From Hyalangium minutum (GTDB lineage Bacteria; Myxococcota; Myxococcia; Myxococcales; Myxococcaceae): 62,712 nt of DNA. Shown here one piece after another: positions 19,087 through 19,261 of the stretch. The notes under the pieces were generated by a model, which was not told the DNA's origin, made no database searches, and saw nothing but the letters and a program-made list of their open reading frames with translations. The stretch spans positions 1 to 62,712 of the forward strand of contig NZ_JMCB01000033.1 of the NCBI RefSeq assembly GCF_000737315.1. Direction: 5' to 3'. The position numbers and the translations under genes were made by a program. The stretch's first letter is position 1. Every line of letters begins with the position of its first letter.

Positions 19087-19105
19087 GGCCTCGTGGCCGT
19101 GCCGC

Positions 19106-19186
19106 TGACATGTCAATGCGGGGCGCTGACATGTCAGTCCGTGCCGCTGACATGTCAGCGGGAAATATTCGTTATCTGACATGTCA
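19106..19186. repeat. array of four TGACATGTCA palindromes
   Basis: Copies at 19106-19115, 19127-19136, 19148-19157 and 19177-19186 (periods 21, 21, 29). The third sits in a perfect 18-bp palindrome, CCGCTGACATGTCAGCGG (19144-19161). Confidence 0.95.
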
Positions 19187-19230
19187 AGTGGGCTTGAGGT
19201 CCCGCTCTGGAGGTGAGGCTGACCCGGGTT

Positions 19231-19246
19231 TGGCGCGCTGCGTGCA
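19231..19246 (+). promoter_or_regulatory. candidate sigma54 (-24/-12) promoter of the geosmin operon
   Basis: TGGCGCG-CTGC-GTGCA vs consensus TGGCACG-N4-TTGCA, with correct GG/GC spacing. Caveat: it predicts only about a 5-nt leader. Confidence 0.35.
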
Positions 19247-19261
19247 ACAGGGGGCGCACCC

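Follow-up and report, generated by a model that had tools for sequence, protein, structure and literature searches.

Four copies of a 10-bp palindrome in the spacer upstream of the geosmin synthase gene geoA probably constitute the enhancer of a sigma-54 promoter that drives the geoA-enc1-enc2 operon, a reading based on comparison of the DNA with that of related loci. Palindromes of this type, helically phased, and a single -24/-12 element recur at a fixed distance from one another upstream of geoA in nine loci, this one included. Few microbial volatiles are as widespread as geosmin, and its transcriptional control in myxobacteria is essentially undescribed; the recurrence in eight related loci provides a concrete handle on that control in this lineage.

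The palindrome array and the putative promoter element in the window

The window (the whole 62.7-kb stretch of DNA that was analysed) is contig JMCB01000033.1 of assembly GCA_000737315.1, from Hyalangium minutum DSM 14724. A 175-bp spacer separates geoA from an upstream TonB_C-domain gene that ends at position 19086 (Table 1). The GeoA protein of the window is 93% identical to a Hyalangium gracile protein annotated as a 'family 2 encapsulin cargo terpene cyclase', and the ATG of the gene is secure because an N-terminus beginning with MA is conserved among the loci. The domain matches bear out the gene context of the initial annotation, namely a terpene synthase gene followed by two shell genes, including its view that the downstream 'Crp-like' genes encode shell proteins: both products carry cNMP_binding and SrpI-like domains and belong to the family-2B encapsulins. 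The cNMP domains of these shell proteins are not DNA-binding regulators (10.64898/2026.07.21.739788). Elsewhere in the window, HsdS and HsdM genes of a type I restriction-modification system are present on the reverse strand (33456–36273), with no restriction subunit seen adjacent to them and an amine oxidase gene as their neighbour on the opposite strand.

Table 1. Features of the geoA region, in window coordinates; site centres are given relative to the predicted transcription start.
Feature	Coordinates	Strand	Description
Palindrome site 1 (cTGACATGTCAa)	19106–19115	.	Exact match; centre ~-146.5
Palindrome site 2 (cTGACATGTCAg)	19127–19136	.	21 bp from site 1; centre ~-125.5
Palindrome site 3	19148–19157	.	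Core of the 18-bp palindrome CCGCTGACATGTCAGCGG; centre ~-104.5
Palindrome site 4 (cTGACATGTCAa)	19177–19186	.	29 bp after site 3; centre ~-75.5
Putative sigma-54-type promoter element TGGCGC-GCTGC-GTGCA (TGGCGCGCTGCGTGCA)	19231–19246	+	GG at 19232–19233, GC at 19244–19245
Predicted transcription start	19257	+	12 nt past the C of the GC element, as is usual for sigma-54 promoters
geoA	19262–21508	+	Two-domain germacradienol/geosmin synthase, 748 residues; Pfam Terpene_syn_C_2 matched twice, E = 1e-103
enc1, family-2B encapsulin shell protein 1	21569–22975	+	cNMP_binding and SrpI-like domains
enc2, family-2B encapsulin shell protein 2	23016–24425	+	cNMP_binding and SrpI-like domains

An exact-match search finds four copies of TGACATGTCA in the window, all of them inside 81 bp of the spacer before geoA and at spacings of 21, 21 and 29 bp; no further copy is present in the window when one mismatch is allowed. 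The generalised motif TGACRYGTCA was tested against 100 shuffles of the window, which gave a mean of 0.24 copies per whole window and in no case reached four, and the occurrence of four palindromes in 81 bp is thus far beyond chance. Copies 1–3 have a CGC/CCGC-TGACATGTCA context in common, copy 3 lies within a perfect 18-bp palindrome (19144–19161) and 19 bases are identical between sites 1 and 3; Tandem Repeats Finder reports three 21-bp units at 19097–19158 with 82% matches. The initial description of the array, with four exact palindromes, a 21-bp period and shared context for the first three and a longer palindrome in the third, is therefore upheld. Site 4 is peculiar to the window among the nine array-bearing loci, the others having two or three sites, and is ~2.5 bp out of helical phase.

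A further candidate site, TGACTGTCA at 21520–21528, had been proposed as a variant of the palindrome ahead of the first shell gene. It is a single copy with a half-site spacing that differs from that of the array, 26 of the 100 shuffles hold one such sequence, and it is absent from orthologous geoA-shell spacers, including the homologous 60-bp spacer of the closest locus. It was consequently rejected as an array-related site and is regarded as a chance occurrence.

The sigma-54-like element that had also been noted downstream of the array begins 44 nt after copy 4. Its GG and GC are 12 bp apart from start to start, which is the correct spacing for sigma-54, and it agrees with TGGCAC-N5-TTGCA at nine of 11 consensus positions, the two deviations being TGGCgC and gTGCA. 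For the bare pattern TGGC-N8-TGCA the window shows no enrichment (three occurrences, with 3.2 expected), so that the weight of the element derives from the comparison with other loci and not from the pattern, which alone is no rarer than chance. The predicted leader in the window is only 5 nt long and would contain no Shine-Dalgarno sequence. The same layout is found in one Archangium gephyra locus (L207, from CP102578; element at L207:5972–6001), where the leader would be 3 nt. Since the predicted start lies this close to the ATG in both loci, any Shine-Dalgarno-like bases would go untranscribed. A leader of 3–5 nt is unusual, yet it recurs in two loci that are set apart on a rough GeoA tree; the leaders predicted for the other array loci are 24–165 nt long.

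No sigma-70-type promoter was found between 18900 and 19400 in an E. coli-based scan, which has limited power for myxobacteria. The spacer before geoA yielded no intrinsic terminator, the array region matched no Rfam family and gave only sub-threshold miRNA noise, and the spacers of the array-bearing loci contain no conserved match to the IHF consensus.

Conservation and geometry among geoA loci

The exact sequence TGACATGTCA is found in none of 80 geoA loci from reference genomes. When the two central bases are relaxed, three copies of TGACNNGTCA appear in a row upstream of geoA in A. gephyra; elsewhere in ~820 kb this sequence occurs only as four scattered singletons, and in ~256 kb of myxobacterial loci it is confined to the region upstream of geoA. 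The array-bearing set comprises nine geoA loci from three genera, including the window, which are related by descent and so do not represent nine independent trials. The other eight (H. rubrum, H. versicolor, a Hyalangium sp., an 84%-identical metagenome contig, two A. gephyra loci, A. minus and Cystobacter fuscus) have two or three TGAC-RY-GTCA palindromes upstream of geoA, spaced 11–24 bp apart; the C. fuscus sites are degenerate. The array, whose absence from orthologous operons had been named in the initial annotation as a sign of neutral duplication, is present upstream of the orthologous operon in eight further loci of one lineage.

Each of the nine loci also has exactly one same-strand sigma-54-like element (TGGC-N8-TGC) that agrees with the consensus at 8–10 of 11 positions, the C. 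fuscus element beginning with GGGC rather than TGGC. It lies 71–95 bp after the start of the last site (in the window, 83 bp after site 3). The background of such matches in the same DNA is 0.42 per kb per strand, so that ~0.01 would be expected per locus in a 25-bp slot. Six geoA loci examined in the same way, from M. xanthus, two Corallococcus, Stigmatella, Melittangium and Vitiosangium, have neither an array nor a sigma-54-like element with at least eight of 11 positions. The palindrome is also absent from two further Corallococcus geoA loci, and no array was found in the Sorangium, Polyangium, Nannocystis, Paraliomyxa, Kofleriaceae, cyanobacterial and actinobacterial geoA loci that were fetched.

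The gene upstream of the array differs in identity and orientation in every array locus, and the DNA between and around the sites has diverged. That the sites and the element have been kept at a fixed distance while the surrounding DNA diverged speaks against neutral duplication and is in keeping with a sigma-54 enhancer. This joint conservation with the -24/-12 element supports the initial suggestion of an enhancer array, possibly for a sigma-54 enhancer-binding protein (bEBP).

The geometry of the nine loci was measured relative to a start placed at the C of the GC element plus 12. Site centres range from -75.5 to -146.5 in the window and from -92.5 to -159.5 in the other loci. A palindrome is centred between -113.5 and -116.5 in eight of the nine loci; the sites of the window at -104.5, -125.5 and -146.5 are one helical turn off those of the other eight. 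Measured from the -24 element, the sites cluster in helical phase (27 sites, R = 0.63, p = 6e-6, Rayleigh test; p = 0.008 with one site per locus), with p-values that are optimistic because the loci are related. In five loci 82–85 bp separate the last site from the -24 element, with almost no sequence identity in that interval, and the leaders vary from 3 to 165 nt across the array loci. A constant distance from array to element, combined with variable leaders and upstream genes, indicates that array and promoter element form a linked pair that accompanies geoA. In six loci the sites are 20–24 bp apart. Those of A. gephyra PVMSAZ and C. fuscus are closer, at 11–13 bp, A. minus has intervals of 19 and 13 bp, and most of these values are near whole helical turns. 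In the two A. gephyra assemblies (L002 and L207) geoA occupies different neighbourhoods, with urease genes adjoining it in CP102578, and the sites are packed at 11 bp in L002 and at 21 bp in L207; the two may be paralogous copies, each with a triad of sites and a sigma-54 element.

Alignment of the 27 sites with their own reverse complements gives the consensus (c)TGAC-RY-GTCA(g), in which information is confined to a 10–12-bp dyad. The two central bases are purine-pyrimidine in every site, and nothing beyond ±6 rises above background. Because information is confined to the dyad, the longer repeats of the window reflect local duplication history and not a longer recognition sequence. The extended 18-bp dyad was rejected as the true site on the grounds that its flanks carry no information across the 27 sites. 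No other conserved dyad or repeat is present between -60 and -200 in the nine loci.

In array-less geoA loci a proximal element precedes a conserved ribosome-binding region, GATGAGGTGCA, by ~30 nt (regions compared: L086:5880–6003, L001:3880–4003, L083:5880–6003, L208:5880–6003 and L003/L012:3880–4003). Stigmatella and Vitiosangium share the version CAACACTAGAAGGG, M. xanthus has TAACTATAAC and Corallococcus CTACAAGG; the element looks like a sigma-70-type -10 element. On a rough neighbour-joining tree of GeoA without support values, the array loci fall in one Archangiaceae group, inside which Melittangium and Vitiosangium are nested and outside which Stigmatella, Myxococcus and Corallococcus are placed. 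This distribution suggests that the promoter class changed within the family, in one or more events of either direction. Such an apparent turnover between sigma-70-like and sigma-54 promoters at one orthologous operon within a bacterial family would be of interest in its own right.

Candidate regulators and alternative explanations

The conserved arrangement leads us to infer that a protein binds the palindromes, that a bEBP is the binder, that transcription starts shortly downstream of the -24/-12 element and that it depends on sigma-54. Sigma-54 promoters stay silent until an upstream-bound bEBP hydrolyses ATP; proteins of this kind occupy tandem dyads as dimers, which assemble into hexamers. 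In the proposed mechanism one bEBP, encoded elsewhere in the genome, would bind the consensus sites as dimers; the 21-bp spacing, equal to two helical turns, would bring these dimers onto one face of the DNA, where three of them could form an AAA+ hexamer. The intervening DNA would then loop, with the hexamer touching the sigma-54 RNA polymerase in the closed complex at TGGCGC-N5-GTGCA, and ATP hydrolysis would open the promoter for transcription from near 19257. Geosmin and shell output would be set by whatever signal activates this bEBP, and because bEBPs are sensor-coupled, geosmin output in this lineage is predicted to be signal-dependent.

The position and form of the array agree with such a role. 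bEBP dimers typically bind 80–150 bp upstream of the -24/-12 element (PMC7910581), which is roughly where the array lies, and at least two dyad-symmetric sites are present in a fixed geometry and helical phase. The putative promoter has the GG/GC spacing of sigma-54 promoters and a conserved position in the orthologous loci, with no competing sigma-70 promoter in the E. coli-based scan. The 10-bp dyad is, however, more compact than the 15–17-bp dyads of NtrC, NmpR and PexR, and the 11–13-bp packing of sites in three loci leaves little room for helix-turn-helix dimers. Nor does the motif by itself point to a bEBP, since the same palindrome pairs are found in likely MarR/TetR operators of unrelated bacteria.

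The initial annotation reasoned that the regulator must act in trans, the 'Crp-like' genes being shell genes, and the gene content agrees with this. A scan for bEBP genes by GAFTGA and Walker-A motifs detected none in the 211 loci fetched and only PilR in the window. The pilR gene (51661–53055), the only sigma-54 activator gene in the window, is 32 kb from the array and belongs to the pil cluster; no other obvious regulator candidate is present in the remainder of the window. The cluster itself is a complete type IV pilus block, pilB-pilT-pilC-pilS-pilR, on the forward strand (45879–53055). A TetR-family gene downstream of enc2 was considered as the regulator and rejected, its presence not tracking that of the array.

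The pattern TGACRYGTCA-N9-13-TGACRYGTCA was also scanned against metagenome contigs, and the matches listed were mostly from unrelated DNA; no GeoA-encoding contig was among them. A palindrome pair and a good -24/-12 element occur together in only two of the listed matches, L164 and L087, and the genes downstream, which encode a cyanovirin-N-like lectin and a lipoprotein, gave no hint of a regulator in either case. In L164 (818–1440), a high-GC contig, the palindromes CTGACACGTCAG and CTGACATGTCAA are 21 bp apart and are followed 107–128 bp downstream by a perfect TGGCAC-N5-TTGC and then by an ORF for a secreted cyanovirin-N-like protein; this may be another target of a related regulator. Pairs of the form TGACRYGTCA-N11-13-TGACRYGTCA occupy divergent intergenic regions of actinobacteria-like contigs beside MarR-like genes (L131, L153, L158, L165 and L200), and the same pairs adjoin TetR-like or activase genes in L133, L139, L141, L191 and L203, the MarR/TetR assignments having been read from N-terminal sequences. 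YceI-like or CoA-enzyme-activase genes also adjoin these actinobacteria-like pairs. The proximity to MarR- or TetR-type genes suggests that the same dyad is reused by unrelated regulators. Palindrome arrays with a 22–23-bp period in low-GC contigs (L152:620–920, L172:1078–1220, L124:657–755, L185:1–175 and L166:2375–2656) were rejected as related elements; they are simple tandem satellites that repeat a whole 22-bp unit, and represent an artefact of the search pattern.

These pairs, which lie ~21 bp apart in the MarR/TetR-type regions, bear on an alternative in which the palindromes are operators of a factor other than a bEBP (a MarR, TetR or ribbon-helix-helix repressor or a class-I activator), which would serve a promoter different from the sigma-54-like element or would modulate that element in an accessory role. 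Such a factor is rather unlikely, but it stays a real rival to the enhancer because the dyad is compact, the 11-bp packing is tight and the same pairs stand in MarR/TetR operators; a small-footprint binder would suit both the 10-bp dyad and the 11–13-bp packing of L002, L209 and L210. A repressor operator would be expected to overlap its promoter and to adjoin the gene of its regulator. The sites instead lie 75–160 bp upstream of the sole conserved promoter-like element and not over it, no sigma-70-type promoter was found in the spacer by the E. coli-based scan, and no adjacent regulator gene was found in the window. The distance of the array is moreover conserved to the -24/-12 element and not to the ATG. 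Three genomes do have a TetR-family gene immediately after enc2, but such a gene also occurs in M. xanthus, which has no array, and is missing from the window.

It could also be that the -24/-12 element is functional while some other protein, architectural or co-regulatory, occupies the palindromes, the bEBP sites being elsewhere or absent. The lack of an IHF consensus in the spacers could call for another bending factor, and site 4 of the window, at -75.5, is located where such factors usually bind; the triad, however, is exactly at the usual position of bEBP sites and the region from -60 to -200 offers no other conserved dyad or repeat in the nine loci, which makes this arrangement quite improbable. 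Least probable, to the point of being hardly credible, is that the array is an RNA stem-loop acting as a terminator or stabiliser at the 3' end of the TonB-like gene, or a neutral 21-bp tandem duplication. RNA from 19087–19200 does fold strongly (-56.9 kcal/mol, z = -5.1), and both the three 21-bp copies reported by Tandem Repeats Finder and the 19 bases shared by sites 1 and 3 are what a duplication would leave. The hairpin lacks the U-tract of a terminator and has no Rfam match, however, and rather than being conserved with the upstream gene, which differs in every other locus, the array stays with geoA. A neutral tandem repeat is disfavoured since only the 10–12-bp dyad, and not the whole unit, is kept across the nine loci. 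The strong fold, if the region is transcribed by read-through, is probably a by-product of the repeated palindromes.

If the array is indeed an enhancer, a broader and more speculative proposal may be considered: that a dedicated bEBP gates the production of geosmin and encapsulin in Hyalangium, Archangium and Cystobacter through an unusually compact 10-bp dyad packed at one turn (11–13 bp) or two turns (21 bp), and that this sigma-54 module replaced the sigma-70-like promoter seen in Myxococcus, Corallococcus, Stigmatella, Melittangium and Vitiosangium, converting a constitutive or developmentally tuned gene into a signal-gated one. This proposal is possible but doubtful. Predation and late development are the conditions under which the geosmin cluster of M. 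xanthus is known to be upregulated; for a long time its shell genes were taken for Crp/Fnr regulators (PMC9548883; 10.64898/2026.07.21.739788). In practical terms, the conserved cis-element with its predicted sigma-54 promoter provides an 80-bp bait for the regulator and a motif with which to search for its regulon, and may help in the expression of family-2B encapsulin/terpene systems in myxobacterial hosts.

Relation to known enhancer systems

The best mechanistic analogue for the triad is the NorR-norVW enhancer of Escherichia coli, in which three GT-N7-AC dimer sites are all required for the active hexamer; the organism, site sequence, signal (nitric oxide) and arrangement are different. 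Streptomyces geosmin genes, which belong to the same biosynthetic gene family, are controlled by developmental regulators, without sigma-54 and through another regulator family and site, and no palindromes were found in the actinobacterial geoA loci fetched. Among the papers searched, none was found to connect geosmin to sigma-54 or rpoN, and the four 10-mers came up only as primers and eukaryotic sites and not as a bacterial operator. A 2026 preprint on geosmin encapsulins (10.64898/2026.07.21.739788) does not treat transcription.

Three enhancers of M. xanthus are closer in organism and layout. At katB, a validated -24/-12 promoter is preceded by three perfect palindromes in tandem and by some weaker ones, which are bound by the bEBP PexR, a protein able to form dimers, tetramers and hexamers (PMC12754779); as here, tandem palindromes precede a -24/-12 element in a myxobacterium. 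The PexR site is an interrupted 16-bp dyad (CACCG-n6-CGGTG) in contrast to the compact 10–12-bp TGAC-RY-GTCA, and its target is peroxide defence rather than geosmin and its shell; PexR binding and the katB start are demonstrated by experiment, those of the geoA array being predicted. Several intergenic dyads likewise precede a sigma-54 site in the case of the NtrC-like NmpR, which appears to bind them cooperatively and favours a particular distance between them (PMC11841059); its dyads are GCGCA-N5-TGCGC in pairs 14–15 bp apart, compared with three to four sites mostly at 21 bp in the geoA array, and its regulon differs. Nla28 acts at natural-product genes with sigma-54 promoters through tandem 8-bp palindromic units, CT(C/G)CG(C/G)AG (PMC7910581). 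It therefore resembles the present case in joining sigma-54 and a bEBP to myxobacterial specialised-metabolite genes by short tandem palindromes 80–150 bp upstream of the -24/-12 element, but it differs in sequence and in its targets, which are polyketide and non-ribosomal peptide loci and not a terpene operon. The geoA gene of M. xanthus itself has neither the array nor a sigma-54 element. The proposed sigma-54 enhancer-promoter module is thus of a known type, and the worth of this case comes from its target operon and the clean comparative signal.
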